This document shows positions 4,744-39,814 of a stretch of 64,000 bases of DNA, in pieces. The notes under the pieces are model-generated. The model saw only the letters and a list, made by a program, of their open reading frames with translations, made no database searches and was not told the DNA's origin. Position numbers and translations under genes: made by a program. Within the stretch, counting starts at the first letter, position 1. Each line of letters opens with the position of its first letter. This DNA comes from Macrostomum lignano. Taxonomy: Eukaryota. Where the stretch lies: NCBI GenBank assembly GCA_002269645.1, contig NIVC01001895.1:60772-124771 (forward strand). The letters run 5' to 3'.

Positions 4744-7700
4744 TCACAATCCGGCCCCAGTCTGATTGTCCTCCTCAGCCGCAGCTGCCAGCACCGCAGC
4801 CTCAGCTTCAAGCCGTTTCTTAGTCCGCTTGTCAGCGTGCGGCACGGCGCCCCAGGCCAGCTGGTGTCGGCACAGGGCCTCGATGGGACCCAGCACGGCG
4901 GGAAGGCAGTCTGACCGGTGCTCCAACGCATCGACAGCCAAGGCGGCAGCCTCAGCGGTGCACAGACAGCCGACATCTGGCTGTGTTCGAATCACGTAAG
5001 CTGACGGGGTGTTGGGCGCGGCAACCCGGATATGGGGCAGCTTGTGCAGGAAGTCGTTGTGAAAGTGCAGCCCGCTGGCCTGCTGCCAGGTGCCGTCGAG
5101 GACCACCAGAGTGGTCACGCTGCCGCGGGGCAGAGACTCCGCTAGCACCGAGTCGCTGCTGGGATACAGCACAGCGCAGCCGGGGGAATCGAGCTCGCGA
5201 CGTCGCTTGTGGCTGGCGAAATGACGGCCGCGCCAGATTTCAACTCGACCGGGCGCCGCGGCCAGCTGCAGCATGCGGGCCGTCTGCAGCTTGCGATGCT
5301 CCTGCCAGGGGGGGGGGATTTGTCCTCATTTGTAGGTTTGTAGGAACAATAGAGCAAGGTACTGCTGCTTTGCATTCCGGTCCAATGTTCACTCTACTGA
5401 TTCTTAGAAATCGTTTCTTTCCAGTGACTCTTAGAAACCCATGAACTGATTCTTAGAAATCTCATCAACCATATATTCTTAGAAATCTCGTTATACTGAT
5501 TCTTAGGAATCTCATCATCCCCTGATTCTTAGAAATCTCATCATCCCCTGATTCTTAGAAATCTCATCATCCCCTGATTCTTAGAAACCTCATCATTCAC
5601 TGTTTCTTAGAAATCGTTTCTTTCCAGTGACTCTTAAAAACCCATTAACTGATTCTTAGAAATCACAGCATCCAGAGTTTTCAAGAAATCACATTGACTG
5701 ACTCTTAGAAATCAAATCCTCTGATTCTTTAAAATCTCATTCACTGATTCCCAGAAATTTCAACCAAACATTCTCAGAAATCTCATTTACTGATTCTCAA
5801 AAATCTCATCATCCAAAATCACATCCTCAGATTCTCAGAACTCTCATCCTCAAATTCTCAGAAATCTCATCTGCTGATTCTCAGAAATCTCATCCACTGA
5901 TTCTTAGAAATCTTATCATCCACTGATTCTTAGAAACCTCATTCATTCACTGATTCTTAGAAACCTTATTCATTCACTGATTCTTAGAAACCTCATTAAT
6001 TCACTGATTCTTAGAAATATCATCATCCACTGATTCTCAGAAACCTCATTAATTCACTGATTCTTAGAAATATCATCATCCACTGATTCTCAGAAACCTC
6101 ATTAATTCACTGATTCTTAGAAATATCATCATCCACTGATTCTCAGAAACCTCATTAATTCACTGATTCTTAGAAATATCATCATCCACTGATTCTCAGA
6201 AGTCTCATTACATACTGAATTTTAGATATCCAGAAATTTCTTAGATTTCCCTTATTTTAGTCGGTAAAACTTGTTGGTACATGTGCGAGCACCCTTTCTC
6301 CCTACAGAACAGGCCCCAGCCTTAGTTTTCATCTTAGGCTTTCCGTGCATTTTTTAGAACATTCTATTTTTTCCGCACACACCTCAGACAGCTCAAAATG
6401 CAAATATGAACGTGATTAAAAAATGCAGCCCTCCAAACTCTACCAAAAATGAAGAAATTCAAGCCAACACATTAAATAGCAGCTAACTAGCATGCTCCAA
6501 GTCTGCAAACTTTGCGTACGTGTAGGGAGCTCTGTGAACCAACACGTTAGTAAAATACGAACCAATGTCTGCATAGCTAACACCAAAGCAGGTGAAAAAA
6601 GTTTGCATGACTGCACGTGTGACGGTTAACTTTTTATTAGAGACCCAACATCATTTTTATGCGGTATTTACTCGGGGGAGGGGGTAGATGGCTGCTGAGG
6701 TGAAGGAACTTCAGCACTGGACTGAGATGCTTCAGGAAGGGGGATAGCCGGTCCTCAGGGTGACTGGAGGTGCTGCTTCAGGAAGGGGGATAGCCGGTCC
6801 TCAGGGTGACTGGAGGTGCTGCTTCAGGAAGGGGGATAGCCGGTCCTCAGGGTGACTGGAGGTGCTGCTTCAGGAAGGGGGATAGCCGGTCCTCAGGGTG
6901 ACTGGGATGCTTCAGGAAGGGGGATAGCCGGTCCTCAGGGTGACTGAGATGCTTCAGGAAGGGGGATGGCCGGTCCTCAGGGTGACTGAGATGCTTCAGG
7001 AAGGGGGATAGCCGGTCCTCAGGGTGACTGGAGGTGCTGCTTCAGGAAGAGGGATAGCCGGTCCTCAGGGTGACTGAGATGCTTCAGGAAGGGGGATAGC
7101 GGTCCTCGGGGTGACTGGGATGCTTCAGGAAGGGGGATAGCCGGTCCTCAGGGTGACTGGGATGCTTCAGGAAGGGGGATAGCCGGTCCTCAGGGTGACT
7201 GGAGGTGCTGCTTCAGGAAGGGGGATAGCCGGTCCTCAGGGTGACTGAGATGCTTCAGGAAGGGGGATAGCGGTCCTCAGGGTGACTGGGGTGCTTCAGG
7301 AAGGGGGATAGCCGGTCCTCAGGGTGACTGAGATGCTTCAGGAAGGGGGATGGCAGTTTAAAGTAGCAGCAGAATATCGAACTAAAGCTTCAGAATTGCA
7401 TAAAACCATCTGAATTTGCCTTTTAGTTTCTCAAAAATTTCAGCTAACAGAAAAGGTCGAATGGCATATAAAACCAAAAGCAGACTGGGCAGGAAACTCT
7501 TGCCGATTCCAAATTAAGTCGGGTCTGCAACCCCGGCTATTCCCTAGGGAAATCTGTCCTAAGGCAGATAACGACACACGACGCAGGCAAAGGCGGACAA
7601 TACGAGTATCTGTGGGACAACCTAGAGGCGTGAAAACTGTTATTCCCGCAGTAACAACCGAGCCCACAGCGGATTATCCTAGAGTTCTCTAGTTCGAAAA

Positions 7701-14975: not shown

Positions 14976-17900
14976 TTAGACAGCCACACGAGCATGAGTA
15001 GACTCATTCAGATGCTCATCAACCGCATTAATCTCGTCCAGATAGACCTGCGGATTCTGCCCGCCGTCATTGCCAGACTGCTCAGCAATCTCCTTTATCA
15101 TGGCTTGCATTGACCGCTGACGGTGCTGCTGGCTTCTCTGACGTCGGTCTCGAGTTCGCTTGAGTCTGCGCACGTTGCCAGCCGCCAGGCTGTAGCCCTT
15201 GTGCAGGGTGAGCAGCACGCCGCACAGAGAGGCGCCGACGCTCCAAACGGATTGAGTTCGAACGACATGCGACTCAGCCAGAATGCCGCTCTTCCATTCG
15301 AAGAAGAGAAAGAACTGCTTCTTCAGTCTTGTGTCCGCAGTTGGTCGCATCGGCCCTGCCTGAGTTCGCTTCATGCGCCGCCGTCTCCGCCGCCTCCGGC
15401 CGTCTGTTGCGTTGTCCGACTTGATCGGCGCTTCTGGCGCGTTTTCTATGAAATACGAAGCCGCCAGGCTGCTCTGCGCGTTGTTGAAGGATGATTTGAA
15501 CAAACTTTTATTATGAAAATTCAAGCAATATGCTGAAGAAGAAGAAATTGTAGAAGAAATATTGTATCGCCATATAGTGTCTTTAGGCGTTGTGAAATTT
15601 AGGTCTTGTGAAATTTAGGGCTTGTGAAATTTAAGGCTTGTGAAATTTAGGTCTTGTGAAATTTAGGTCTTGTGAAATTTAGGTCTTGTGAAATTTAGGG
15701 CTTGTGAAATTTAGGTATTGTGAAATTTAGGTCTTGTGAAATTTAGGTATTGTGAAATTTAGGGCTTGTGAAATTTAGGTATTGTGAAATTTAGGGCTTG
15801 TGAAATTTAGGTCTTGTGAAATTTAGGTCTTGTGAAATTTAGGTCTTGTGAAATTTAGGTCTTGTGAAATTTAGGGCATGTTAAATTTAGGTCTTGTGAA
15901 ATTTAGGTCTTGTGAAATTTAGGGCATGTTAAATTTAGGTCTTGTGAAATTTTAGGTCTTGTGAAAATTAGGTCTTGTGAAATTTAGGTCTTGTGAAATT
16001 TAGGTATTGTGAAATTTAGGTCTTGTGAAATTTAGGGCTTGTTAAATTTAGGTCTTGTGAAATTTAGGTCTTGTGAAATTTAGGGCTTGTTAAATTTATA
16101 GTTTATGCAGTCTGATGCAAGTTTTGTTTCCGACGTTGTGAAATTTAGGGTTTGGGAAAGCTCTGCCCCCTGACACTCTGAAAATATATTAGGCAACCAA
16201 TATTTGGATCCGAGAAAGCCCCGCTGACCTCCATATCTAGAATGGTCCTAGCTGGTCCTTCTCCATCTTCCAGGTGCAGCTGGGTCATGCTGATCTTGCC
16301 CCACAGGCGCAGGCCTGCCGACGCAGCGTGCAAGGACTCCTGGGCGTGAGCTCGGGCTATGCGGTCTAGTCTGAGTTGGTCCGGTCTGAAAACATGATCA
16401 GTACGCTTTTTGGAGTGCTTTTTGGTTGAATTATTTATTAAAACATAATGATCATATTACAGAAATGAGCACATCAATAGCTCACTCAGGTGACAATCAT
16501 ATTACAGAAATGAGCACATCAATAGCTCACTCAGGTGACAATCATATTACAGAAATGAGCACATCAATAGCTCACTCAGGTGACAATCATATTACAGAAA
16601 TGAGCACATCAATAGCTCACTCAGGTGACAATCATATTACAGAAATGAGCACATCAATAGCTTACTCAGGTGACAATCATATTACAGAAATGAGCACATC
16701 AATAGCTCACTCAGGTGACAATCATATTACAGAAATGAGCACATCAATAGCCCACTCAGGTGACAATCATATTACAGATATCAGCACATCAATAGCTCAC
16801 TCAGGTGACAATCATATTACAGAAATGAGCACATCAATAGCTCACTCAGGTGACAATCATATTACAGAAACCAGCACATCAATAGCTCACTCAGGTGACA
16901 ATCATATTACAGAAATGAGCACATCAATAGCTCACTCAGGTGACAATCATATTACAGAAATGAGCACATCAATAGCTCACTCAGGTGACAATCATATTAC
17001 AGAAATGAGCACATCAATAGCTCACTCAGGTGACAATCATATTACAGAAATGAGCACATCAATAGCTCACTCAGGTGACAATCATATTACAGAAATGAGC
17101 ACATCAATAGCTCACTCAGGTGACAATCATATTACAGAAATGAGCACATCAATAGCTCACTCAGGTGACAATCATATTACAGAAATGAGCACATCAATAG
17201 CTCACTCAGGTGACAATCATATTACAGAAATGAGCACATCAATAGCTCACTCAGGTGACAATCATATTACAGAAATGAGCACATCAATAGCTCACTCAGG
17301 TGACAATCATATTACAGAAATGAGCACATCAATAGCTCACTCAGGTGACAATCATATTACAGAAATGAGCACATCAATAGCCCACTCAGGTGACAATCAT
17401 ATTACAGATATCAGCACATCAATAGCTCACTCAGGTGACAATCATATTACAGAAATGAGCACATCAATAGCTCACTCAGGTGACAATCATATTACAGAAA
17501 CCAGTACATCAATAGCTCACTCAGGTGACAATCATATTACAGAAATGAGCACATCAATAGCCCACTCAGGTGACAATCATATTACAGAAATGAGCACATC
17601 AATAGCTCACTCAGGTGACAATCATATTACAGAAATGAGCACATCAATAGCTCACTCAGGTGACAATCATATTACAGAAACCAGTACATCAATAGCTCAC
17701 TCAGGTGACAATCATATTACAGAAATGAGCACATCAATAGCCCACTCAGGTGACAATCATATTACAGATATCAGCACATCAATAGCTCACTCAGGTGACA
17801 ATCATATTACAGAAATGAGCACATCAATAGCTCACTCAGGTGACAATCATATTACAGAAACCAGTACATCAATAGCTCACTCAGGTGACAATCATATTAC

Positions 17901-19110
17901 AGAAACCAGTACATCAATAGCTCACTCAGGTGACAATCATATTACAGAAATGAGCACATCAATAGCTCACTCAGGTGACAATCATATTACAGAAACCAGC
18001 ACATCAATAGCTCACTCAGGTGACAATCATATTACAGAAATGAGCACATCAATAGCTCACTCAGGTGACAATCATATTACAGAAATGAGCACATCAATAG
18101 CTCACTCAGGTGACAAATCAGCATCGAATTCCAAACTCACAGCGCACTGAACTCGGAGAAGTTGTGCATCAGCAGAAACGACATGGTGTAAAAGTCCTGA
18201 CTGTGACTGTGGGTGACAAAGTGCAGAGACACGGTCTCCTTCTCCTTGACCCTTCTCGGTCCCCGAAAAACTATTACGAAATGGGAGTCGTTCAACCGGA
18301 GTGAGTAAGGGTCATTGTACTCCACTGAGATGAAGGTGCAGTTTATTGTTTGCAGATTCCAGTCCGTGGCATTGTCTGCAATGAAGACGGTCAATCATGA
18401 ATTACTTTAATAGGTAAATATCTATTTAATCCCAGCACACAAGACAGAAGTATCAAAGGTGTTGATTTCTTCAAAGGATAAAAATATTGAAACTTGCAGA
18501 ATCTTTCATATAGGAGCATACAAGCTGGAGTCGTTTTGCGATCCTGATTTCGGTGAATCCTAAAGGAAAAGAGGATTACGATACTAGGATTGCAACAATG
18601 ACGACAGCAGCAACAACAAAATCAACAAAAAATGTTGTAATATCAACAACAACGGAGGAACAACAAAAACATCATCATCAACAACAACAACAACAACAAC
18701 AACAACAAAAACAACAACAACATAGAAACAACAGCAACAACAATAGAAACAATAACAATAACAGTAGAAACAACAACAATATAAACAATAACAATAACAG
18801 TAGAAACAACAACAATATAAACAACAACAATAACAGTAGAAACAACAACAACAAAAACAACAAAAACAGCAACAACAATAACCAGTAGCAACAGCAATAA
18901 CAACAACAATAACAACAACAACAACATCAACAAAAAAACAACAATAAAAATAACAGCAACAATAAAAATATATCAACAACAACAACAACAACATGAACAA
19001 TAAAAATTTATCAACAACAACAACAACAACAACAACAACATGAACAATAAAAATTTATCAACAACAACAACAACAACAACAACAACAGCAGCAACAATAA
19101 CAACAACAAT

Positions 19111-19156
<46 letters not shown>

Positions 19157-22100
19157 TCAACAATAACAGCAACAATAAAAATAATATCAACAACAACAAC
19201 CGAACAGCAAGATCAAATAAACAAATCACAAACATGGATTTCACTAGCAAACATGTGCAAATCTAAATCAGCATCGTTGAATCAGTCGCTATTTCGGTTA
19301 GAAACCCACTGTACGAGCGTACAGTAAAAAAATACAACTTTAGATCATGAAAAAATGATAAAAGTAAAACTCACTCCAGAATTCCATCTGCAGCTCATTG
19401 AAATGATTGCAGGACTCGAGGTGCGCCTTCTCCGGGAAAATCACGATGGCTGATTGGAAACATATTCAAGTGCGAAAAAATATTGATTAAGTTTTCTTGC
19501 TTCATAAACCTTAGCCTATCTGGTAATTAGATTAAGCTGTCAGTTGATTAATTGAACAGAAATCAGTCTTTTCGAGTCAACCAACAACAATATACGAGCC
19601 ATTGTCTGGGGTTGTCAAACAATGGAGCTTAGATCGCATGGGATATCAGTTCCAGGCAATTGTTTTTCCCATAGATCTACTCCATTCTCCCAGTTTTTCT
19701 CTGTATGATAAAAATGGGTGCATGGGCGATCAGAGATTTTGTCTGCTTACATCATGACACGGAGTATTTTATATCAGATGTTTGGTTTGATTGATGTGTG
19801 CCTCTGATATTTTGCTTTTTTGACAGGCTGACAACACAGTTGACAATCAAGGGCGCCGCTAACTACTGAAGGATCTGAGAGAGACAGCGGCGCCACTACT
19901 GAAGGATCTGAGAGAGACAGCGGCGCCAGTACTGAAGGATCTGAGGGAGATAGTGGTGCCACTACTGAAGGATCTGAGGGAGACAGTAGCGCCACTACTG
20001 AAGGATCTGAGGGAGACAGTAGCGCCACTACTGAAGGATCTGAGGGAGACAGCGGCGCCACTACTGAAGGATCTGAGGGAGACAGCGGCGCCACTACTGA
20101 AGGATCTGAGGAGACGGTGGCGCCACTACTGAAGGATCTGAGGGAGACAGTAGCGCCACTACTGAAGGATCTGAGGGAGACAGTAGCGCCACTACTGAAG
20201 GATCTGAGGGAGACAGTAGCGCCACTACTGAAGGACCTGAAGGGTCTGAGAAAAATAGTGGCGCCACTCCTGAAGGGTCTGAGAGAAATACTACTGAAGA
20301 ATCTGAAAGAGATAGTGGCGCCACTCTGAAGAATCTGAAAGAGATAGTGGCGCCACTCCTGAAGGGTCTGAGAGAAATACTACTGAAGAATCTGAAAGAG
20401 ATAGTGGCGCCACTCTGAAGAATCTGAGGGAGACGGTAGCGCCACTACTGAAGGATCTGAGGAGACGGTGGCGCCACTACTGAAGGATCTGAGGAGACGG
20501 TGGCGCCACTACTGAAGGATCTGAGAAAGACAGCGGCGCCACTCCTGAAGGATCTGAGGGAGACAGTGGCGCCACTACTGAAGGACCTGAAGTGACAATC
20601 AGCTGAGTAAGCATCTGGTGGACAGTTTTTGAGGCAGAAAAAATTGAATTGACAACATGACTGACAGGCTGTTAGATAGGCTTCGAAGCAATCTTTTTCA
20701 AAGCCTGCCTTTCATCCAACCCACTAGAGTGCACCAGTGCATCCCTAAGCCTGAAATCCCGGAAGCGCAGTCAGTGTGCCGCGCTGTCTGTTATTAATTA
20801 TAAACTGCAGTAGCAACGGAGGCCCTGATGGGACGGGAGGGCTCAGACAGACTCCCTGTGTATCAATATTTATATAGAATTCATTTATGACGAGGCCACA
20901 TCAGCAATAAAGGATGTCTGTGAGATCTCAGCCTCTAGGAAAGATATTGTTGTCATGCTCATTGAGAAGGGATAGGTGGGGATGGGATAGATTGGGATGG
21001 GATAGATTGGGATGGGAGAGATAGGGATGGGATGAATATAAAGCAAAAAGCATCGGTCAGAAGCTGCTCATAAAGCATCAGTCAGAAGCTGCTCATAAAA
21101 CATCAGTCAGAAGCTGCTCATAAAGCATCAGTCAGAAGCTGCTCATAAAACATCAGTCAGAAGCTGCTCATAAAGCATCGGTCAGAAGCTGCTCATAAAG
21201 CATCGGTCAGAAGCTGCTCATGAAGCATCAGTCAGAAGCTGCTCATAAAGCATCAGTCAGAAGCTGTGCATAAAGCATCGGTCAGAAGCTGCTCATAAAG
21301 CAGTCAGAAGCTGCTCATAAAGCATCGGTCAGAAGCTGCTCATAAAGCATCAGTCAGAAGCTGTGCATAAAGCATCGGTCAGAAGCTGCTCATAAAGCAG
21401 TCAGAAGCTGCTCATAAAGCATCGGTCAGAAGCTGCTCATAAAGCATCGGTTAGAAGCTGCTCATAAAGCATCAGTCAGAAGCTGCTCATAAAGCATCAG
21501 TCAGAAGCTGCTCATAAAGCATCGGTCAGAAGCTGCTCATAAAGCATCAGTCAGAAGCTGCTCATAAAGCATCGGTCAGAAGCTGCTCATAAAGCAGTCA
21601 GAAGCTGCTCATAAAGCAGTCAGAAGCTGCTCATAAAGCATCGGTTAGAAGCTGCTCATAAAGCATCGGTCAGAAGCTGCTCATAAAGCATCGGTCAGAA
21701 GCTGCTCATAAAGCATCAGTCAGAAGCTGCTCATAAAGCAGTCAGAAGCTGCTCATAAAGCAGTCAGAAGCTGCTCATAAAGCATCGGTTAGAAGCTGCT
21801 CATAAAGCATCAGTCAGAAGCTGTTCATGAAGCATCGGTCAGAAGCTGCTCATAAAGCAGTCAGAAGCTGCTCATAAAGCATCGGTCAGAAGCTGCTCAT
21901 AAAGCATCGGTCAGAAGCTGCTCATAAAGCATCGGTCAGAAGCTGCTCATAAAGCATCGGTCAGAAGCTGCTCATAAAGCATCGGTCAGAAGCTGCTCAT
22001 AAAGCATCGGTCAGAAGCTGCTCATAAAGCATCGGTCAGAAGCTGCTCATAAAGCATCGGTCAGAAGCTGCTCATAAAGCATCGGTCAGAAGCTGCTCAT

Positions 22101-25100
22101 AAAGCATCGGTCAGAAGCTGTTCATGAAGCATCGGTCAGAAGCTGCTCATAAAGCATCGGTCAGAAGCTGCTCATAAAGCATCGGTCAGAAGCTGCTCAT
22201 AAAGCATCGGTCAGAAGCTGCTCATAAAGCATCGGTCAGAAGCTGCTCATAAAGCATCAGTCAGAAGCTGCTCATAAAGCATCAGTCAGAAGCTGCTCAT
22301 AAAGCATCGGTCAGAAGCTGCTCATAAAGCATCGGTCAGAAGCTGCTCATAAAGCATCAGTCAGAAGCTGCTCATAAAGCATCGGTCAGAAGCTGCTCAT
22401 AAAGCATCAGTCAGAAGCTGCTCATAAAGCATCGGTCAGAAGCTGCTCATAAAGCATCGGTCAGAAGCTGTTCATGAAGCATCAGTCAGAAGCTGCTCAT
22501 AAAGCATCAGTCAGAAGCTGCTCATAAAGCATCGGTCAGAAGCTGCTCATAAAGCATCAGTCAGAAGCTGTTCATGAAGCATCAGTCAGAAGCTGCTCAT
22601 AAAGCATCAGTCAGAAGCTGCTCATAAAGCATCAGTCAGAAGCTGCTCATAAAGCATCAGTCAGAAGCTGCTCATGAAGCATCAGTCAGAAGCTGCTCAT
22701 AAAGCATCGGTCAGAAGCTGCTCATAAAGCATCGGTCAGAAGCTGCTCATAAAGCATCGGTCAGAAGCTGCTCATAAAGCATCGGTCAGAAGCTGCTCAT
22801 AAAGCATCGGTCAGAAGCTGCTCATAAAGCATCGGTCAGAAGCTGTTCATACAGCATCGGTCAGAAGCTGCTCATAAAGCATCGGTCAGAAGCTGCTCAT
22901 AAAGCATCGGTCAGAAGCTGCTCATAAAGCATCGGTCAGAAGCTGCTCATGAAGCATCAGTCAGAAGCTGCTCATAAAGCATCGGTCAGAAGCTGCTCAT
23001 AAAGCATCGGTCAGAAGCTGCTCATAAAGCATCGGTCAGAAGCTGTTCATGAAGCATCAGTCAGAAGCTGCTCATAAAGCATCAGTCAGAAGCTGCTCAT
23101 AAAGCATCAGTCAGAAGCTGCTCATAAAGCATCAGTCAGAAGCTGCTCATGAAGCATCAGTCAGAAGCTGCTCATAAAGCATCGGTCAGAAGCTGCTCAT
23201 AAAGCATCGGTCAGAAGCTGCTCATAAAGCATCGGTCAGAAGCTGCTCATAAAGCATCGGTCAGAAGCTGCTCATACGCACCAGGGGCCTCAAATTCTTC
23301 CACCGGTCGGTGCTTGAGCGACCGAACCGGGAACCGCAGCGCCAGCAGCAGCTCCTCGAGCAGCTGCACGGCGAACAGACAGGCAGCCAAGCCGAAGGCG
23401 GTGAGCACTGCGGTGCAGACCAGTCTGCACACGTACTCGCTGCGGGTCATGTGCCGCTCCGCAGTCGGCGCTGCTGTCACCGAAGCCGCATCCGACGACG
23501 TTGATCGACGCTTTTTTCTTTGTCTTGTCCGGCCGTTTATCGGCGCGAATTGGATCAGTGCGCGACGCTTTTGTAGCCAAGTTCGCTGGCGGAGTGACGG
23601 CTGGGCGGCTGGGCTGCAATGCGATGGCGTGGGAGCGTAGATATCTAATCTAATCTAATCTAATCTAATCTAATCTAATCTAATCTAATCTAATCTAATC
23701 TAGTCTAATCTAATCTAGTCTAATCTAGTCTAATCTAGTCTAATCTAATCTAATCTAGTCTAGTCTAGTCTAGTCTAATCTAATCTAGTCTAGTCTAGTC
23801 TAGTCTAATCTAGTCTAATCTAATCTAATCTAATCTAGTCTAGTCTAGTCTAGTCTAATCTAATCTAGTCTAGTCTAGTCTAGTCTAATCTAATCTAGTC
23901 TAATCTAATTTAATCCAGTCTAATCTAGTCTAATCTAATCTAGTTTAATATAATCTAGTCTAGTTTTATCTAATCTAATATCCGTCTTTTTCACACTAGT
24001 TTTTCATAATAAATTTCCTCCCAAGTTTCTGCATTAACAATGTATCTCGATAGATTTTGCATACTTCGCTGGAACAACCGAAATCCGAGCCTGCTGCTGC
24101 TGCTGTTGCTCCAGCCTAGGGGTGTTCGGGGTTCGGGGTCGGGTCGGGTTTCGGGTCGGGTTTTGGTACCGGGTTCGGGGTTCGGGGTAGGTGTTCCGGG
24201 TCGGGTTCGGGGTTCGGGGTAGGGGTACCGGGTTCGGGGTTCGGGTCGGGTTTGGCCACCGGGTTTTCGGGGTTTTGAACAATTATCATTCTCAATAGTA
24301 TTTTCAAGCACTTTTTACTCCTTATGCAAAATCCACAATGCGAAAGATATGCATTGAGTTTCAGGTACAACTTAAGTTATATTTTACATACAATTTGAAA
24401 CGGAAATAGCAGATAGAACCATGGATTCATTTACACTTTCTGGTAAATAACGATTGTCGTTTTTCGACCCATTCAGTCTTGCAGTTGATGATTTAAAAAA
24501 TTACGTTCAGTAATAATTTTACATGTGCTACGTGTAACATGGTCTGAACTTCTGGATTGGATGAGGAAGCTTAAAATTTATAAATACACTATTATTCTCC
24601 ACGCATCAGTCGCCAATAATCAATTATCACAATGATTACCTACTCATATCAGCATACAATTTTATGTAAAGACGTCACTTTAGTTTTTACATAGCAATTC
24701 TGTTATACCACTACTGACTTACTGTTAACTGTAGTCAAAAGTAAAAATAAATATATATTTGTGATTAACTCTCCTGTTTCATTGTATCATTGTTTTATCT
24801 GTGCTATCTCTTTATCGCTCTAGTTCTATCTCTACTGATATCTACACTACAGGGTATAATCTAATTTTATTGTACTCTATTTTTGCAGCTTAAATAAACT
24901 CATAGATGTAATATACCTTTTAACAGTGTTGTTGGGCATAAGTGAAATTTATTTAGTCCAAGTGTTCCTACCACTGAGTGAAGTGAGTTTGATTTAGTCT
25001 AGCTGTTGATTTTGGCCATAGACGATTGATGAAAAGTGAAATATATTTGGTCGCTCTTGCTTAGCGCTGAGCTTACCGTGACTTAAAGTTAGTCGTAGTG

Positions 25101-26239
25101 AAATTTATTTAGTCCGCTTAGAGTTCTTGTTTGGCTATAGAATTTGCTGAATCATAGAATTCTTTCCATGGAGGCTCCAGCAGCACAGAGACGAGTCGCT
25201 GTTTCGCAGCAAGACAGGCGAAGGCTGGTCAATGCCTTTGTTCTCAACGAGGACTGGCTCAATCTGGCAAAACAGCTCAACATACCGCGCCAGTCTGCAA
25301 GGAATGTTATCGTTAAGTTTGAGCGAACTGGTCGTGTCGAGGCGGAAAAGCGAGGAGGCAACAAGCCGAAAGCTCTGAGTGATGAGATGATCGAGGCTCT
25401 CGTGGGATTTGTGGCGGACACGCCAGCTGCGACACTACAAGACATGCGGAGACATCTTATGTGTTTTTGCGCCTTTTTGAAAGTTTACGATCTCGTTGAC
25501 CATATTCATTTCACTTTGACTAAATAAAAGTCACGATCTCGTTGCGCGCGCTAAAAACGACTATATTGAATTCACCGTCTATGGCTGCAAGCTAATTGAA
25601 GCGACTAAATCAAACTCACTTCGCTCAGTGGTAGGAGCACTTGGACTAGATAAATTTCACTTATGCCCAACAACACTGTTAAAAGGTATATTACTATTAT
25701 TATTCATTTACTTTGTCTATGAGCCCAGTATGTAGTCTACTATCTAGCATCTACTGAAAATAAATGACAAAGGACCGAATTAACTAACATTGTAACTAAC
25801 AATCACAGTTTGAATTTCCTGAAGCTGAAGGATTGGAATTGTGCAATGTAATTTACACTTATACAACAAATATAAACTGTGTTTGTCCCAAGTCATTCAT
25901 GAGCTAACGTCGCGCCCAAAAGGCTTACAATTGAAGTGAAGTACAAATGAATATTGTACCTTTATCGGTGGAAAAAGTGTATTAATTTATTAAAATGATT
26001 GACCAAAATAAGCGTGAAAATGTTCGGGGTTACGTTCGGGGTCGGGTCGGGTTTTGGTACCGGGTTCGGGGTTCGGGGTTGGAAGAAATGTTCGGGACGG
26101 GGTTCGGGGTTCGGGGTAGGGGTACCGGGTTCGGGGTAAACCCCGAACCCCGAAAAAATGGCCGACCCGAACACCCCTACTCCAGCCTCTCACCGACATC
26201 GCCGGAGTTCTGCAGTCGATCATCTGCATCCAACTCCAT
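14976..26239 (-). CDS. PACC1: Proton-activated chloride channel (PAC/TMEM206) homologue. Exons: 26239-26180 plus 24108-24065 (split by the hAT insertion), 23613-23282, 19449-19375, 18375-18141, 16385-16229, 15473-14976. 466 aa if restored; 377 aa from the ATG at 23450
   Basis: All five introns are GT-AG with consistent phases. Gapless motif matches to recalled human PAC: LRFPVRSLKHRPVEEFEAP vs LKHPVMSVSYKEVDRYDAP; IFPEKAHLESCNH vs LYPGQAQLLSCKH; GPRRVKEKETVSLHF vs GPREVKKRELVFLQF; SAGLRLWGKISM vs SGGFRTWVKMSL; FFLFFEWK and WSVGASLCGVLLTLHK vs FFVVFEWK and WNTIALLCGAFLALFK. Two predicted TM helices. Confidence 0.88.
15590..16145. repeat. 16-bp minisatellite (TTGTGAAATTTAGGTC) embedded in a copy of the foldback-element arm
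   Basis: Direct reading; both flanks match the reverse complement of 11085-11180. Confidence 0.92.
16448..18118. repeat. 45-bp satellite, about 37 copies, filling a PACC1 intron
   Basis: Period 45; it generates the spurious 574-aa ORF (HITEMSTSIAHSGDN)n. Confidence 0.96.
18590..19205. repeat. Degenerate (CAA/AAC)n microsatellite region
   Basis: Direct reading. Confidence 0.92.
19850..20590. repeat. About 33-bp minisatellite (GCGCCACTACTGAAGGATCTGAGGGAGACAGTA)
   Basis: Direct reading. Confidence 0.92.
21046..23277. repeat. 25-bp satellite (AAAGCATCGGTCAGAAGCTGCTCAT), about 89 copies
   Basis: Period 25; runs up to the PACC1 donor site at 23281. Confidence 0.96.
23644..23975. repeat. (TCTAA/TCTAG)n pentanucleotide microsatellite
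   Basis: Direct reading. Confidence 0.95.
24117..26179. mobile_element. Non-autonomous hAT-type DNA transposon, 2063 bp
   Basis: Perfect 14-bp TIR TAGGGGTGTTCGGG. Perfect 8-bp TSD CTCCAGCC at 24109-24116 and 26180-26187. Subterminal TTCGGG(G) repeats at both ends. Confidence 0.92.
24914..25688 (+). mobile_element. Internally deleted Tc1/mariner (IS630-Tc1-mariner) element nested in the hAT
   Basis: About 85-bp near-perfect inverted termini flanked by TA. ORF 25168-25527 encodes a paired-type HTH, an RGGNKPK linker and a second HTH; no DDE domain. Confidence 0.82.
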
Positions 26240-26985: not shown

Positions 26986-27454
26986 TTCTTGCATAGAATT
27001 TGAATATATTTCAGTGAAATATGACTCAGAAATCTAGGACTTCAAGGAAGTAGAATTAATCGTCCAAGTTCTGAATACTGGAGTCCTTGAGCCTGACTAG
27101 CCGACCAACCACGCCGGTGTCCCAGCTGTCAGGGAGTGGCTATGGTTATTGCTAAAAAAGGGATATGGCAATAGAGGCCGAAAAGTACACAGCCGCATGC
27201 CATTTCCGACTAGTAAATTTGGTCGCAGCATCCAGGCGGATTCTTGGGGGCGTCTTTCTTCAGTTGAAAATTTCATCACACCAGGAATTTAATTAAATTA
27301 GCTCTAGCACTAGGTTAGCTGACAAAGTAGAATTCTAGTAATGCGCAGGAAGTTCAAAGTTGAAAAAATGTTTAAAAATCAAGACCATGAAACGAAGTAC
27401 AAGGCTAATAAATAAGCATAAAAACTTTTTAACGGTTTGCCCATTGCGTTAGCT

Positions 27455-27882
27455 TGGTAGTTGTAGAAAATGTTCCAGAACACGCCGAAAAGAAACATGC
27501 ATGCCAGCACAACCCAGCACACAATCGACACCTTGCTCTCCCACGGTTTCTTGTCGATGTTTCGTAGAATGGGAACTCCAGCAAAGAACCCAGCCAGCAG
27601 GCCTCCGACGTGAGCAGCAACGCTCACAGGGAGGGTTTGAGTTCCGGAGTAGCGTCCATAGAAACTAATGCCAAAGTCCAGGATGAGCAAGAGGGTCAGA
27701 TAGACAAGGCGCATGATCCCACTCAGAAGGAATTTCAGCGGATTTGCTCTGATATCCAGCCAGTCATCCTGCAGCTCCTCCCAGTTCATGAGCACTGTGG
27801 CATAGTGGGCTCCGAACAAAGCGTACACCCCACCGGAGGCTCCGATCAGCATGGTGTTGTGGTCTGCGATGCTGCTAGCCAT
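27455..27882 (-). pseudogene. 5'-truncated rhomboid copy (from just before the GASGG helix to the C-terminal TM helix)
   Basis: Near-identical to copies A and B from MASSIADH to FWNIFY. No homology upstream; 3-nt deletion then an unrelated C-terminus. Confidence 0.85.
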
Positions 27883-28947
27883 GGATTTTTCCGCTATTGT
27901 TGTCAATAGAAATTCAAAGCTTCACAATATCAGAACAACCCTTAGGCTGCACCGTGTATAGTATCCATGGTTGTCCATCGCTGTATGCGTTTATCAGGAG
28001 CTGACATACTCAATTAATATTATACTCAATCTCCAAGTAGGCTTGGAGATCAAAATATCTATATTTCTTTATGCGCGAGAAATCTTCGAAAGAGTCAGCC
28101 GCCATCTTCGTCCATTTGGCCGACCCTTAACTGCCTTGAGCTCCATATTTTGCCTGAAGTTTTTAAATGCTAGAGGGCTTCTGGGGTTGCTCAGAACCTT
28201 GGAGACAAGGCTTATACAGGATCTGGTATCTAAGTTTAGATAGCTGGCTTTCGGTCTAATGCTGTTTTGCTTTAAACACCATCTTCCTTAGTAAATTTAC
28301 TTCACAATAGTGTGACTCCACAAAGTCAAAACCTACATGTAGTCGATTCAAAAATCTTTATTCCTTTCTTTTGTTGCCTCCCCAGAGGGGGGCGCAGATC
28401 GCTAGTCCATACACTATTTATCCAGGCGTAGCCTTTAAAGTTGGATATGCAACTAGCTTAACCACTGCACCGTCTGTCCAAGTTGTTTATTATTGTGAGA
28501 CATTTTCAGGCTGCGAAAGCCCAACATCATGAGCATGAAGATAGAATGTGAGATAGAGAGAGCTGGGGGCGCTCTATCGCTTCGTTTGCTGTCCGTCTAT
28601 TCAGTTTTTTTCTATATAGAAGTAACTGAGAAAGTAAGAAGCTTCTAACTAAAATATGGACGGAAAGTAAGGGTTCTAACGGACAAGAGCAGTTTGTTTT
28701 CAAAATTTTGACAAAAGAGACTTAATTAATATTGTCCTTTTTTCGTAAAACAAGATGACAAATTTTTTTTTGTTTTTCGATCGAATTAACTTCTTATGCC
28801 AGGATTGCGATGACCAAGTTGCTGCAGAAACTCAATTTCATTCATTTTATAGAATATCGAGCGCTCGATATTCTCTGATTCATTTCTAAACCGCTAATTT
28901 CTTCCTCTAGTATTGATCGATCAAGATGCCACAAACATCTAGCTACA

Positions 28948-30072
28948 TGCTTTCAACCATAGACAGTCTCTGCTGAGCCCTAAATCGCCACAAAGCATAC
29001 AAGCGCATAGCTAAACGTTTTTCAACCATAGACAGTCTCTGCTGAGCCCTAAATTGCCACAAAGCATACAAGCGCATAGCTAAACGTTTTTCAACCATAG
29101 ACAGTCTCTGCTGAGCCCTAAATTGCCACAAAGCATACAAGCGTATAGCTAAACGTTTTTCAACCATAGACAGTCTCTGCTGAGCCCTAAATCGCCACAA
29201 AGCATACAAGCGCATAGCTAAACGTTTTTCAACCATAGACAGTCTCTGCTGAGCCCTAAATCGCCACAAAGCATACAAGCGCATAGCTAAACGTTTTTCA
29301 ACCATAGACAGTCTCTGCTGAGCCCTAAATCGCCACAAAGCATACAAGCGCATAGCTAAACGTTTTTCAACCATAGACAGTCTCTGCTGAGCCCTAAATT
29401 GCCACAAAGCATACAAGCGCATAGCTAAACGTTTTTCAACCATAGACAGTCTCTGCTGAGCCCTAAATCGCCACAAAGCATACAAGCGCATAGCTAAACG
29501 TTTTTCAACCATAGACAGTCTCTGCTGAGCCCTAAATCGCCACAAAGCATACAAGCGCATAGCTAAACGTTTTTCAACCATAGACAGTCTCTGCTGAGCC
29601 CTAAATCGCCACAAAGCATACAAGCGCATAGCTAAACGTTTTTCAACCATAGACAGTCTCTGCTGAGCCCTAAATCGCCACAAAGCATACAAGCGCATAG
29701 CTAAACGTTTTTCAACCATAGACAGTCTCTGCTGAGCCCTAAATCGCCACAAAGCATACAAGCGTATAGCTAAACGTTTTTCAACCATAGACAGTCTCTG
29801 CTGAGCCCTAAATCGCCACAAAGCATACAAGCGCATAGCTAAACGTTTTTCAACTATAGACAGTCTCTGCTGAGCCCTAAATCGCCACAAAGCATACAAG
29901 CGCATAGCTAAACGTTTTTCAACCATAGACAGTCTCTGCTGAGCCCTAAATCGCCACAAAGCATACAAGCGCATAGCTAAACGTTTTTCAACCATAGACA
30001 GTCTCTGCTGAGCCCTAAATCGCCACAAAGCATACAAGCGTATAGCTAAACGTTTTTCAACCATAGACAGTC
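28948..30072. repeat. 69-bp satellite, about 16 copies
   Basis: Period 69; it generates the spurious 388-aa ORF. Confidence 0.95.
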
Positions 30073-31224
30073 TCGGCGCAGAAATGAAACCACGTTTGAA
30101 ATTTTTCAATTAACGACAAGACAAGACATTTCAATTTAGCCTGGACCGAGGGGAAGGGTTTCTGGGGCAGAGGGTCCGATGGGTAACTTTAGACTCTCGT
30201 TCGGGAAATCGTCCATGAATTTCATTTCGCCCCACTGGTGGGGGTTTGCTTAACCATACTTCTATTATTCGCTGTCGTCTCTCTCAATTGTCAAACAGAG
30301 AGGTAAGGGCTGCTGCGTTTCTGCTAACTTTGCCATATACTTGGTTTGTATTATAATTGAATTATGTATCGTATGCTGTATGCTATATTTACCAACTAGA
30401 ACTGGCACACACCTATAAGGGCGAGCCACCACACTTCGGACAAACATAGGGAGATATCTAAATATAGCACAATACGTATTGCTTTCAGCTAGCACAGAGA
30501 TGACCTCAAAATCTTAGTACGGTCCTAACCCTCTGCAAGACACCAGTGTGTTGTAGAGATTTCTACTCAAAAAACTGAGTAACGTTCAGACTGGTTGCTC
30601 AGAGGGATTTTTTAAAAAAATTGGACAGATTTTTACAGCCTAACGATTTCTTGTTCTCAAGCGATTAATTATAGGGTTTTTTATCGAAATAATATAAGCA
30701 TGAGCTGATCCGGGGCAGATTGCAGTAAGCAATGCTGCTTGCTTCTATAAGCAGAGAGCAGGAAAAATATCGCTTATTCGTGACAACACTGCTCTCGAAC
30801 GCTGACGATTGGGTGACACGCACTAAAACCGCAGATTAGAGTGGGCAATGATTTATTGAATTCACGAGCCATGCACAAACTATTGGCATATATGGCTGAG
30901 GACCATATTAATTAAAGCGTACTAAAAATTGAGAATTTAATGAGCTTGCCCCAGCAGACCAGGTGGCCAATTAAAGAAACTAATTTAATTATAGTTGCAG
31001 GTGACAGCTGCGCAGGAAAGCAAGTCATTATTTCAGTAGCTATAGGAAATGATTCACTTATTATCATTCACATACTGCAACCATTATGAATCGTAATTCA
31101 ATTAATTCTCTGCCATATTCCAGCTACACTTTTCTACGTTTGCACATGCCCCAGTGCGTGACATTCCATCATATCTCGTATAGGTAGTTAGTCAGTTTTA
31201 GGCACTTTTAAAAAGTTCAGGGGG

Positions 31225-32862: not shown

Positions 32863-34488
32863 TTATCCTTTCGAGTCGGCTAGCGCTGTGTTGGAGCAGA
32901 TGATGCTGTCAGCTGCTGGGTAGTTCTTGTAGAAAATGTTCCAGAACACGCCGAAAAGAAACATGCAAGCCAGCACAACCCAGCACACGATCGATACCTT
33001 GCTCTCCCACGGTTTCTTGTCGATGTTTCGTAGAATGGGAACTCCAGCAAAGAAGCCAGCCAGCAGGCCTCCGACGTGAGCAGCAACGCTCACAGGGAGG
33101 GTTTGAGTTCCGGAGTAGCGTCCATAGAAACTGATGCCAAAGTCCAGGATGAGCAAGAGGGTCAGATAGACAAGGCGCATGATCCCACTCAGAAGGAATT
33201 TCAGCGGATTTGCTCTGATATCCAGCCAGTCATCCTGCAGCTCCTCCCAGTTCATGAGCACCGTGGCATAGTGGGCTCCGAACAAAGCGTACACCCCACC
33301 GGAGGCTCCGATCAGCATTGTGTTATGGTCTGCGATGCTGCTGGCCATGGCACCAATAATGACGCCGATGAAGAAGACTGGTGCAACACGCCAAGCCTTG
33401 TGAACAGTCTCAAGAGGCACACCTAGAAGGAACGACAGGATCGTGTTGAAGACGACGTGGTGGTAGCCATTGTGCAGAAACATGTAGGACACGAAGCGCC
33501 AAGCTTCTTGTCGGAGACTCGGACAGAAGACCAGCGGGCTGTAGTACGGGAATCCTTTTTCCCATCCCACCTTGTTCCACTCGGGTCCCTTGGACAGCTC
33601 AACCGTGTAGATGATGAAGAAGATCCAAACGGCTACATAGAACAGCGGAATGAAGAGCGGCGGCGGCCTGCAGTTGTACGCCTCAAGGTAGCTCTCTTCC
33701 GGGATCGGCTCTCCGGCTTGAGCTGCCTGGATCTTCTCTTTGCGAAGCTTCTTCTGCGCTGCAGGCGTCATGCTCTCGATGAACGAGTTGATGACTCTCT
33801 TCGATCGAGACACCTCCGACTTTTTCGTGTACTTCATTCCGTTAAAGAACTCGTCCCAAGACACTCGTTGGTTTCCGTCCTTGTCCAGCCTCTTAAACAG
33901 TCCCTGAAGGTTTCGAGACCGGTTAAAGTTGACAGACTCTGCCATCTCCATGAACTCCTTGAGCGGCATGCCTCCAGCAGTCACGTACGGATCGAAGCGG
34001 TACTTAAAGTTCTTGGTGAGCCACTCTCTGTACTGGTCTTCGTTTATGTGCTCAGAGTTGTCGCAGTTCGATGAAGCGCACACACTGATTGCGGCACTTC
34101 CGCCTCCGTGACCTCCGTCAGGCTTGTCGTGTCCGGAGACGCTGAGGAAGTTTCTGTTTGTGTTCGACGCAGTGACAGTCGGATGCTGCATCTCGAACTG
34201 CTGGTTCGCGAACTGGGCCTTGAGCGAGTGGCTCGTTCCGTTTCCGTTGGCTGCGGTCCCGCCGCCGATACTTTGCGAGTATTCGTATCGTCCGGTAGCT
34301 GAGGCAGGATACTGCTGGCGGGTGTCCAGCTCCACCCGAACTTCCGGGACAGAGTAGCCATACTGGAGCTGCCGCTGGCCGGACGATGTGGTTGTGGCGA
34401 CTCTCTGCTGCGTCTGGGACTGGTAACTTTGGGACTGGTTGGACTGCTGAGCCTGGGGCTGCATGGTGTAGTAGCCGCGATTGTCCAT
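32863..34488 (-). CDS. Intronless EF-hand-containing rhomboid intramembrane serine protease (Rhomboid-4/RHBDL-like), copy A, 541 aa
   Basis: EF hand DKDGNQRVSWDEF, WR motif, HVVFN, catalytic GASGG and AAHVGG. The ATG at 34488 matches the start of copy B. Confidence 0.93.
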   Translation of the reverse strand: MDNRGYYTMQPQAQQSNQSQSYQSQTQQRVATTTSSGQRQLQYGYSVPEVRVELDTRQQYPASATGRYEYSQSIGGGTAANGNGTSHSLKAQFANQQFEMQHPTVTASNTNRNFLSVSGHDKPDGGHGGGSAAISVCASSNCDNSEHINEDQYREWLTKNFKYRFDPYVTAGGMPLKEFMEMAESVNFNRSRNLQGLFKRLDKDGNQRVSWDEFFNGMKYTKKSEVSRSKRVINSFIESMTPAAQKKLRKEKIQAAQAGEPIPEESYLEAYNCRPPPLFIPLFYVAVWIFFIIYTVELSKGPEWNKVGWEKGFPYYSPLVFCPSLRQEAWRFVSYMFLHNGYHHVVFNTILSFLLGVPLETVHKAWRVAPVFFIGVIIGAMASSIADHNTMLIGASGGVYALFGAHYATVLMNWEELQDDWLDIRANPLKFLLSGIMRLVYLTLLLILDFGISFYGRYSGTQTLPVSVAAHVGGLLAGFFAGVPILRNIDKKPWESKVSIVCWVVLACMFLFGVFWNIFYKNYPAADSIICSNTALADSKG

Positions 34489-35399
34489 CTCTGTTCGGTC
34501 AGTTTTCCAATTTTCTGTTAGACTTTCTTTGCTCAAGTGTTCAGTGAGCTGACTCAGTTCGTTCCTGCCCAACATTTGTATACCATTGAGTGCAACAAAG
34601 CAAGTCACGAAGCCCTCCCCCATTCCCTGGCAGCCAATTCGCTCATGCTAGAAGCATGCTTGCTTCACGCCCTCTACTTCTGCCGAATGAGCGTTTTGCA
34701 TTTGCAGCCTGTAGTAAATGTAGCTCTTTACCAACGCCTTTCGTAATTGAATGCTGTAACACGCTTGGCTAGCTGTGTGCTAAGAATATCATTCTATTTA
34801 CCTGAAATATTTTGTGAAGCGGCAAAATAAGATATTTATTATAAGCCTGCGCTTCAACTCAATACTTTATCGGCGTATTCACTTGGAGCAATGGGTTTAC
34901 TAAAGGGTGTTTACGCGTCTTCGGCTTTGCTTTAATTTTTTGCAGTGGCACGTATAAAACACTTTGTAGCTGCTGGAAACTTCTGAGGAGGTTGCGATGC
35001 ATTTCATTAGTTTATATCGTCTTTTATCATGTTATGCATTGTTCTTCTATTTACTGATCACTAGCGATATGTTCGCTACATTCGCTTGTGAAGTGTATAA
35101 TGTATGTAAAGATTAGCTTCATCGTTTTATTGAATTTTGCTTCGGAAGCCTTTCATTTCAACCTCGTGAAGACGAATCGCATGCTTAGCCATTGTTCAAT
35201 AGATTGACCAGGTAAATCTCTACAATTACCGCTCCTACAATAAATGCAAACGTACCTGCTTAAACGGAACTGATTAATATACCAGGTAGGAAGTCAAATG
35301 CGACTATAACCCAAATAACGTCAAATAATGTACAATCATACAATCATATAATTTCGCGTACATTTCTAGTCGGGGTTGCTGCATACTTTGCGTCTTGCA

Positions 35400-38191: not shown

Positions 38192-39814
38192 TCATCCCAA
38201 CGAGTCGGCCAGCGCTGTATTGGAGCAGACGATGCTGTCAGCTGCTGGGTAGTTCTTGTAGAAAATGTTCCAGAACACGCCGAAAAGAAACATGCATGCC
38301 AGCACAACCCAGCACACAATCGACACCTTGCTCTCCCACGGTTTCTTGTCGATGTTTCGTAGAATGGGAACTCCAGCAAAGAAGCCAGCCAGCAGGCCTC
38401 CGACGTGAGCAGCAACGCTCACAGGGAGGGTTTGAGTTCCGGAGTAGCGTCCATAGAAACTGATGCCAAAGTCCAGGATGAGCAAGAGGGTCAGATAGAC
38501 AAGGCGCATGATCCCACTCAGAAGGAATTTCAGCGGATTTGCTCTGATATCCAGCCAGTCATCCTGCAGCTCCTCCCAGTTCATGAGCACCGTGGCATAG
38601 TGGGCTCCGAACAAAGCGTACACCCCACCGGAGGCTCCGATCAGCATTGTGTTATGGTCTGCGATGCTGCTGGCCATGGCACCAATGGTTACACCGATTA
38701 GAAACACTGGACCTACTCGCCAAGCTTTGTGGACACTTTCCAGCGGGATTCCTAGAAGGAACGACAGGATCGTGTTGAAGACGACGTGGTGGTAGCCATT
38801 GTGCAGGAACATGTAGGACACGAAGCGCCAAGCTTCTTGTCGGAGACTCGGACAGAAGACCAGCGGGCTGTAGTACGGGAATCCTTTTTCCCATCCCACC
38901 TTGTTCCACTCGGGTCCCTTGGACAGCTCAACCGTGTAGATGATGAAGAAGATCCAAACGGCTACATAGAACAGCGGAATGAAGAGCGGCGGCGGCCTGC
39001 AGTTGTACGCCTCAAGGTAGCTCTCTTCCGGGATCGGCTCTCCGGCTTGAGCTGCCTGGATCTTCTCTTTGCGAAGCTTCTTCTGCGCTGCAGGCGTCAT
39101 GCTCTCGATGAACGAGTTGATGACTCTCTTCGATCGAGACACCTCCGACTTTTTCGTGTACTTCATTCCGGTAAAGAACTCGTCCCAAGACACTCGTTGA
39201 TTTCCGTCTTTGTCCAGCCTCTTAAACAGTCCCTGTAGGTTTCGAGACCGGTTAAAGTTGACAGACTCTGCCATCTCCATGAACTCCTTGAGCGGCATGC
39301 CTCCAGTAGTCACGTACGGATCGAAGCGGTACTTGAAGTTCTTGGTGAGCCACTCTCTGTACTGGTCTTCGTTCATGTGCTCAGAGTTGTCGCAGTTCGA
39401 CGAAGCGCATACACTGATTGCGGCACTTCCGCCTCCGGGACCTCCGTCAGGCTTGTCGTGTCCGGAGACGCTGAGGAAGTTTCTGTTTGTGTTTGACGCA
39501 GTGACAGTCGGATGCTGCATCTCGAACTGCTGGTTCGCGAACTGGGCCTTGAGCGAGTGGCTCGTTCCGTTTCCGTTGGCTGCGGTCCCGCCGCCGATAC
39601 TTTGCGAGTATTCGTATCGTCCGGTAGAGGCAGGATACTGCTGGCGGGTGTCCAGCTCCACCCGAACTTCCGGGACAGAGTAGCCATACTGGAGCTGCCG
39701 CTGGCCGGACGATGTGGTTGTGGCGACTCTCTGCTGCGTCTGGGACTGGTAACTTTGGGACTGGTTGGACTGCTGAGCCTGGGGCTGCATCGTGTAGTAG
39801 CCGCGGTTGTCCAT
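38192..39814 (-). CDS. Intronless EF-hand rhomboid protease, copy B, 540 aa
   Basis: Same motifs as copy A; intact ORF. Confidence 0.93.
   Translation of the reverse strand: MDNRGYYTMQPQAQQSNQSQSYQSQTQQRVATTTSSGQRQLQYGYSVPEVRVELDTRQQYPASTGRYEYSQSIGGGTAANGNGTSHSLKAQFANQQFEMQHPTVTASNTNRNFLSVSGHDKPDGGPGGGSAAISVCASSNCDNSEHMNEDQYREWLTKNFKYRFDPYVTTGGMPLKEFMEMAESVNFNRSRNLQGLFKRLDKDGNQRVSWDEFFTGMKYTKKSEVSRSKRVINSFIESMTPAAQKKLRKEKIQAAQAGEPIPEESYLEAYNCRPPPLFIPLFYVAVWIFFIIYTVELSKGPEWNKVGWEKGFPYYSPLVFCPSLRQEAWRFVSYMFLHNGYHHVVFNTILSFLLGIPLESVHKAWRVGPVFLIGVTIGAMASSIADHNTMLIGASGGVYALFGAHYATVLMNWEELQDDWLDIRANPLKFLLSGIMRLVYLTLLLILDFGISFYGRYSGTQTLPVSVAAHVGGLLAGFFAGVPILRNIDKKPWESKVSIVCWVVLACMFLFGVFWNIFYKNYPAADSIVCSNTALADSLG

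Follow-up and report, generated by a model that had tools for sequence, protein, structure and literature searches.

In the sections of PMC9351481 that summarise Ruan 2020 and Osei-Owusu 2022, the vertebrate proton-activated chloride channel PAC/ASOR (PACC1, TMEM206) is a trimer whose pore is lined by the second transmembrane (TM) helix, TM2, with K319 conferring anion selectivity and the ectodomain controlling gating. The same sections describe the ectodomain as structurally similar to that of the trimeric ASIC/ENaC channels. Ullrich et al. 2019 (PMC6663466), the founding TMEM206/ASOR paper, reported vertebrate and acorn worm orthologues, 'no homologs in simpler animals', and no species with paralogues, and an earlier note on the DNA analysed here, which described functionally characterised PAC channels as essentially vertebrate, fits this published view. 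Our literature search yielded no publication on flatworm PAC or on PAC in any other protostome. Here we describe a gene on the minus strand of a 64,000-nucleotide (nt) stretch of contig NIVC01001895.1 from the flatworm Macrostomum lignano ("the window", to which all positions refer). With a probability of about 0.9, we take this locus to be a protein-coding PAC/TMEM206-family gene that has at least one paralogue in flatworms.

The window is eukaryotic in character, with short GC-rich open reading frame (ORF) pieces amid AT-rich repeats. Exons were sought by enumerating phase-compatible AG…GT segments and reading the DNA at every boundary. The resulting core gene has five exons (Table 1), all introns of which are GT...AG (phases 1, 1, 2, and 0), and a two-TM product of 377 amino acids, whose numbering is used throughout. 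Its GC content is 0.49-0.65 in exons versus 0.31-0.47 in introns, and by codon position 0.60/0.42/0.69 over the core coding sequence, a coding-type pattern. The gene is single-copy within the window, and three of its splice junctions are backed by independent database models. The locus is almost certainly both a genuine family member and an intact core coding gene. Its exons stand among satellites and a transposon, as the earlier note had described: Tandem Repeats Finder and repeat families place both in the introns. The M. lignano UniProt entries A0A1I8GFN0, A0A1I8GKN4, and A0A1I8HTS3 are referred to below as P0001, P0074, and P0073 (the paralogue), and the nemertean homologue as P0002.

Table 1. 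Features of the 64,000-nt window (a slash within a sequence marks a splice boundary).
Feature	Position	Strand	Details
Core exon 1	23282-23450	-	ATG 23450, TM1 at ~residues 8-38, start of ectodomain (…RFPVRSLKHRPVEEFEAP); donor G/GTGCGT, phase 1
Core exon 2, 75 nt	19375-19449	-	AIVIFPEKAHLESCNHFNELQMEFW; carries C70 (human C128) and H72 (human H130); acceptor ttccaatcag/, donor /gtgagt
Core exon 3	18141-18375	-	NATDWNLQTINCT…GPRRVKEKE…FSEFSA; carries C94 (human C149) and E128 (human E181)
Core exon 4	16229-16385	-	PDQLRL…SAGLRLWGKISMTQLHLEDGEGPARTILDME; donor GAG/GTCAGC, phase 0; junction FSA-L-PDQ used in P0001
Core exon 5	14976-15473	-	SSLAASYF…, lineage-specific eight-arginine loop, FFEWKS, TM2 (…WSVGASLCGVLLTLHKGY…), basic C-terminal tail, stop TAA 14978-14976
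Possible 5' coding extension of exon 2, or 5' untranslated region	23451-23613	-	Open in frame up to stop at ~23655
Second half of ancestral exon 1	24065-24108	-	QQQQQQARISVVPA plus 2 nt, then GT donor 24064-24063; P0074 residues 33-47 map here
Non-autonomous DNA transposon, 2,063 bp	24117-26179	.	Inside what P0074 treats as coding exon 1
Nested Tc1/mariner-like remnant	24908-25694	.	92-nt terminal inverted repeats, 97% complementary; truncated helix-turn-helix (HTH) ORF 25144-25527 (+)
Candidate first coding segment	26180-26239	-	MELDADDRLQNSGDVGERLE; ATG 26239-26237; P0074 residues 1-32 map to 26275-26180, 97% identity (tblastn)
16-mer x32	15582-16098	.	Tandem Repeats Finder, intronic
45-mer x37	16451-18116	.	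Tandem Repeats Finder, intronic
AAC microsatellite x178	18659-19200	.	Tandem Repeats Finder, intronic
33-mer x23	19862-20597	.	Tandem Repeats Finder, intronic
25-mer x90	21047-23276	.	Tandem Repeats Finder, intronic
Rhomboid copies (two full, one truncated)	27379-27906, 32863-34623, 38192-39814	-	ORFs
DTW-domain ORF	4744-5274	-	74 bits
Retroelement integrase fragment	46765-47328	+	Zinc-binding domain and rve core
Ser/Arg/Asp-rich repeat ORF, 658 amino acids	48455-50431	-	Without firm family

Core exon 1 aligns to human PAC 79-114, and TM1 forms the sole strong peak of the hydropathy profile (residues 5-42). The least obvious exon is the 75-nt core exon 2. Its inclusion lifts the phmmer score against the PDB from 81.4 bits (E, 6e-22) to 108.4 bits (E, 3.6e-30) and leaves the alignment to human PAC unbroken from TM1 into the ectodomain; the paralogue P0073 carries a matching segment. 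A direct splice from the TM1 exon into that at 18375 is phase-compatible, yet was dropped in light of this gain in score. Core exon 3 is present in P0001 and, as the stop-free segment 18394-18140, scores 39.6 bits on the Pfam TMEM206 family (PF15122) by itself; the ORF holding core exon 5 (15524-14976, NFHNK… to stop, 181 amino acids) likewise scores 32 bits. The junction between the last two exons, LDME/SSLAAS, is identical in P0001 and has counterparts in P0073 (LDLE/YSLV) and the nemertean P0002 (KIE/YSVV). Candidate exons at 20700-21050 (e.g., GVCLSPPVPSGPP and SDRCFLLYIHP) were dropped for incompatible phases and lack of homology. A hidden intron in the arginine-rich part of the last exon was also dropped, as this part matches the exons in its high GC content, stays in frame, is retained by P0001, and has an N-x-T sequon.

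The 377-amino acid model matches PF15122 at 120.5 bits (E, 1e-34; cut-off 27) and no other Pfam family. In a phmmer search of the PDB, matches were limited to the seven distinct PAC chain sequences that it contains (best E, 3.6e-30), aligned continuously from TM1 to the palm and again over a FEWK-TM2 block. The segments 18394-18140 and 15524-14976, each by itself, also matched PAC chains only. To assess the fold, an AlphaFold2 monomer of P0001, which is 98% identical to window residues 83-331, was predicted from a 29-sequence alignment (mean predicted local distance difference test, pLDDT, 82.5). TM2 is predicted as a long helix (P0001 206-248, pLDDT >90), and the arginine-rich loop is the sole long stretch of low confidence. 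The top 20 Foldseek matches of this model in the PDB are all PAC/ASOR/TMEM206 (E, 3.5e-12 to 1.4e-8; probability 1.00), and the first match outside PAC is ASIC (E, 1.6). ASIC/ENaC were the sole other chains to surface, at non-significant levels (E >1, TM-score ~0.24); these are cation channels, and the flatworm gene is not a member. The profile comparison that the earlier note had proposed for its assignment to PAC/TMEM206 upholds it, as does the fold comparison for the part modelled.

The second flatworm copy, P0073, shows 42% identity across the region from TM1 to TM2, is almost the same in TM2 (LCGVLLTLHKGYSLAAGN), and has corresponding exon-boundary positions. However, it lacks the arginine-rich loop, has 22 extra residues after EFWN, and its database model also contains a fused HTH/DDE transposase. 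When 1.84 billion representative proteins were searched exhaustively by HMMER with P0001, 39 clusters reached E ≤ 0.001. The named matches come from Tubulanus polymorphus, Ridgeia piscesae, the hemichordate Ptychodera flava, and vertebrates, and the rest are ENA, JGI, or Logan sequences. The closest relatives outside flatworms are the nemertean T. polymorphus protein (XP_074645017, annotated 'proton-activated chloride channel-like') and the PAC-like annelid R. piscesae protein (KAK2173466), which are 31-38% identical and share the short N-terminus and a TLHKGY signature in TM2. Unlike the flatworm protein, neither has the arginine-rich loop, and the nemertean one keeps His at the H98 position; both are computational annotations. 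A neighbour-joining tree, built without bootstraps and thus indicative, separates the flatworm pair with the nemertean and annelid proteins, the deuterostomes, and a third clade. The grouping of the flatworm copies with the nemertean and annelid sequences fits vertical descent.

The third PF15122 clade (P0029, P0030, P0033, P0035, P0038, and P0059-P0072) comes from metagenome and SRA assemblies. Its members are ~350-480 amino acids long, with a Lys/Glu-rich C-terminal tail that is coiled-coil-like in appearance. At the one locus inspected (L001 3001-4152, on a 607-kb contig of ENA ERZ25072196, P0061), the gene is a single uninterrupted ORF.

Residues were mapped by alignment to human PAC and by an 11-sequence family alignment, with residue roles taken from the cited sections of PMC9351481. 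The flatworm protein is ~25% identical to vertebrate PAC (human 7JNA, 7JNC, and 7SQF-H) and shares its two-TM topology, both helices being aligned to human TM1 and TM2, its ectodomain fold, and its cysteine pair. C70 and C94 occupy invariant columns of the family alignment. The vertebrate motifs GPRxVK, SxGxRxWxKxS, and FEWK align without gaps (GPRRVK 120-125, SAGLRLWGKIS 182-192, and FEWK 270-273), as does LCGVLLTLHK with human LCGAFLALFK, which places K304 at K319 and L300 at L315. Gapless counterparts of these elements had been claimed in the earlier note, and the claim stands for the motifs and for the presence of both cysteines but not for the stretch between the cysteines, which is 24 residues here versus 21 in human, the loop being three residues longer. 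The same note's several N-glycosylation sequons in a two-TM protein are found as five N-x-S/T sequons in the ectodomain, of which NCT (93-95) falls opposite human N148-C149-T150. According to PMC9351481, assembly and function require the H130-E181 pair, which is kept as H72 and E128, and E199 (E250), E212 (E261), and W289 (W304) are kept as well. The human proton-sensor residues are H98, H130, H131, and D269 (Osei-Owusu 2022, in the same summary). D269 is probably kept as Glu (E222), in an alignment that is uncertain beside an insertion. This insertion, 34 residues and arginine-rich (…APEAPIKSDNATDGRRRRRRRRMKRTQAGP…), lies in a distal ectodomain loop near the D269 position. Further differences from vertebrate PAC are the flatworm C-terminal tail, which is long and basic then acidic, and an N-terminus that is very short or unrelated.

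The five core exons encode a subunit made up of TM1, a β-rich ectodomain of ~250 amino acids, and TM2. By analogy with vertebrate PAC, three subunits would assemble as a trimer, in which TM2 would line the pore, the ectodomain would gate it, and the conserved K304 would confer anion selectivity. On this family resemblance, the gene product probably forms an anion channel. We infer activation by acid to be plausible only, since half of the mapped proton sensors are missing; activation in the vertebrate manner is about as likely as not.

Several points weigh against the main reading of the locus. Two of the four human proton sensors, H98 and H131, are replaced by F40 and F73, and the arginine-rich insertion has no counterpart in any homologue, the paralogue P0073 included. 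The predicted structure is a monomer of the fragment P0001, without TM1 and the first strands, and the Foldseek TM-scores of ~0.5 are pulled down by this absent N-terminal part and by helix orientation. The junctions of the core exons are predictions drawn from homology and from the automated gene models of others. Lastly, poor expression or N-terminal truncation of the window copy could follow from the transposon in its putative first coding exon.

The first two of these points also speak for a reading in which the gene is a true family member with diverged gating, which may be pH-shifted, constitutive, or reliant on proteolytic cleavage in the arginine loop rather than proton-activated as in vertebrate PAC. 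We regard this as possible but doubtful. The proton-sensor replacements are accompanied by those of the acidic-pocket residue E107 (P49) and of E257 (I208), and the insertion (DGRRRRRRRRMKR) is predicted to be disordered (pLDDT 49-60) and carries furin-type R-x-K/R-R motifs. However, the H130-E181 pair, E250, and E261 are kept, D269 is probably retained as Glu, and H98 is not universal even among deuterostomes, being Arg in Ptychodera. Moreover, acid activates every vertebrate orthologue that has been tested, sequence differences notwithstanding (PMC6663466). The broader proposition is unlikely: that the exposed eight-arginine, furin-like loop at the ectodomain tip and the loss of two of four proton sensors may make gating differ, through a shifted pH, constitutive activity, or ENaC-like proteolytic priming, in a PAC family that would be older and more diverse than published, reaching spiralians and including at least two flatworm paralogues. 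If true, the different gating would be a natural experiment on the origin of acid sensing in this channel class.

An eight-arginine run with basic flanks occupies residues 224-253 (~15390-15300, minus strand) and is retained in P0001.

Returning to the PAC-family gene itself, two database entries carry parts of it. P0001, named 'Proton-activated chloride channel', is 98% identical over 249 amino acids, with five substitutions; residues specific to the window copy are T85, F113, S131, A224, and I228. P0074, retrieved by profile search, is 98% identical over the shared part. It reads MELDADDRLQNSGDVGERLE-QQQQQQQARISVVPA-N-PAAQPSLRQRTWLQ…MTRSEYVCRLV…EEFEAP and then runs through the exon-2 donor (the upstream exon being exon 1) into the 25-mer satellite. 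These matches confirm the suspected flatworm origin of the gene. P0001 is the C-terminal and P0074 the N-terminal part of the same gene in another copy or haplotype than that of the window, given the five substitutions in 249 amino acids, seven rather than six Gln, and the absence there of the 2,063-bp transposon; the 75-nt exon is in neither fragment. P0074 is misnamed 'TNFR-Cys domain-containing protein' and has no Pfam match.

By tblastn, P0074 maps to the window in three pieces, 26275-26180, 24111-24058, and 23615-23250, the last covering its residues 48-169 at 98% identity. The ATG at 26239 is the Met of this independent model. After 26180, the next in-frame codon is TAG, made of the first three bases of the inserted transposon. 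The transposon has perfect 14-bp terminal inverted repeats (TAGGGGTGTTCGGG), a pattern that occurs exactly twice in the window, inverted, versus zero expected, as well as subterminal GGGTTCG-type repeats. It is flanked by an 8-bp target-site duplication (GGCTGGAG at 26187-26180 and 24116-24109), which we take to be hAT-like. Excising the element and one copy of the duplication restores the contiguous P0074 sequence GERLE-QQQQQQARISVVPA. Present in the window copy but not in the one behind A0A1I8GKN4, the transposon is an insertion polymorphism that distinguishes copies or haplotypes. The HTH ORF of the remnant nested within it has a weak HTH_32 match (E, 7.8e-4), under the Pfam cut-off.

Because the transposon sits in the exon that supplies the N-terminal cytoplasmic part in the other copy, this part is ambiguous in the window copy. 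One option is translation from the ATG at 23450, giving 377 amino acids and a seven-residue N-terminus. Another is a splice that joins a donor on the 5' side of the transposon, either 26198 or the stronger GTGAGA (26194), with an acceptor around 23585-23613; exon 2 starts at 23613 by the P0074 acceptor versus 23585 in the six-exon model of the earlier note. The in-frame stretch 23654-23451 is stop-free, and the 5' extension, a matter of few codons, has GC content by codon position of 0.57/0.64/0.55, without the coding pattern of the core. A third option is that the copy is damaged.

This third option leads to a reading that we consider improbable, in which the window copy, in a genome of recent polyploidy, is a silent or decaying duplicate; the gene would belong to the family as assigned but would be non-functional here. 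It would account for a transposon with target duplication and in-frame TAG in what P0074 treats as coding exon 1, and for a TGA, shortly before the ATG, where P0074 has a Ser codon. M. lignano is moreover described as a hidden polyploid (PMC10468722), so that redundant copies exist. However, the five core exons are all open with intact canonical sites, differences from P0001 are few, and the glycosylation sequon is kept. Translation from the ATG right before TM1 yields a short N-terminus, like that of the nemertean homologue (MSNRRRQFIG…), and the conserved domain does not include the disrupted region, which may in fact be untranslated or intronic.

The earlier note had proposed six exons between 26239 and 14976 with a product of 466 amino acids. 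Among 540 stop-free GT-AG combinations enumerated, one chain (26239-26198, 23585-23282, 19449-19375, 18375-18141, 16385-16198, and 15532-14976) reproduces this model exactly. Its exons 3 and 4, the 3' ends of exons 2 and 6, and the 5' end of exon 5 coincide with the core model, but its exon 1 and the 5' extension of its exon 2 are tentative, and its exon 5/6 junction (16198/15532, adding the 30 residues VSGAFSDPNIAYCLNFHNKSLFKSSFNNAQ) is contradicted by P0001, P0073, and the nemertean P0002, all of which back 16229/15473. We prefer 16229/15473 because homologues are continuous there, the alternative donor (GTTGCC) is weak, and the added part of exon 6 has an intron-like GC content of 0.32. That the 466-amino acid model is a real transcript is very unlikely, as the extra residues break a strand unbroken in the paralogue, the nemertean protein, and all other homologues, and its exon 1-exon 2 junction differs from P0074 and lacks support of its own, even though every site is GT-AG and in phase, its ATG is the P0074 Met, its acceptor at 15532 has a better polypyrimidine tract than 15473, and its PF15122 score nearly ties that of the core model (119 vs 120.5 bits), a score without power to separate the two junctions.

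That the five-exon PAC gene was hidden from annotation, as the earlier note held, is true in part. A0A1I8GFN0 and its 42%-identical paralogue A0A1I8HTS3 were already named 'Proton-activated chloride channel', but annotation of the locus is poor, being split and misnamed, with the 75-nt exon missed and the paralogue fused to a transposase. PAC labels on fragments of the flatworm gene and on the paralogue, nemertean, annelid, and hemichordate proteins are already public. New here are the complete core gene model with its missed exon, the recognition that two fragments with separate names belong together, the inserted transposon, and the residue-level comparison. The gain is incremental, as the family, the fold, and the presence in M. 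lignano are in public databases; together with those entries, the locus shows that the PAC family has a spiralian branch and that a single species carries two paralogues. As a laboratory model, M. lignano would allow the role of PAC in an invertebrate to be addressed, along with the ectodomain residues needed for acid gating, H98 and H131 being naturally absent. The locus also illustrates how a transposon and introns full of satellites broke automated annotation into misnamed fragments.

The contig index gave no exact-protein match to P0001, to a rhomboid ORF, or to the ORF of the last exon. Satellite content is unusually dense inside this one gene (15582-23979) and includes ATCTA x67 besides the five intronic arrays of Table 1. 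The 45-mer array gives a 574-amino acid plus-strand ORF (16426-18150) that is a repeat artefact. A low-complexity repeat of ~3 kb (53210-56315; GC skew 0.60 and AT skew -0.86 in 54001-56000) yields long spurious ORFs on both strands (RVRV…, GFGF…, and PNPN…).

The two full rhomboid genes, which have an EF-hand region, are single-ORF and near-identical (586 and 540 amino acids). A truncated third copy of 175 amino acids, just upstream of the PAC gene, matches the C-terminal part of the full copies and then diverges. The rhomboid copies are a local tandem duplication, with a long repeat ORF (28943-30109) in between.

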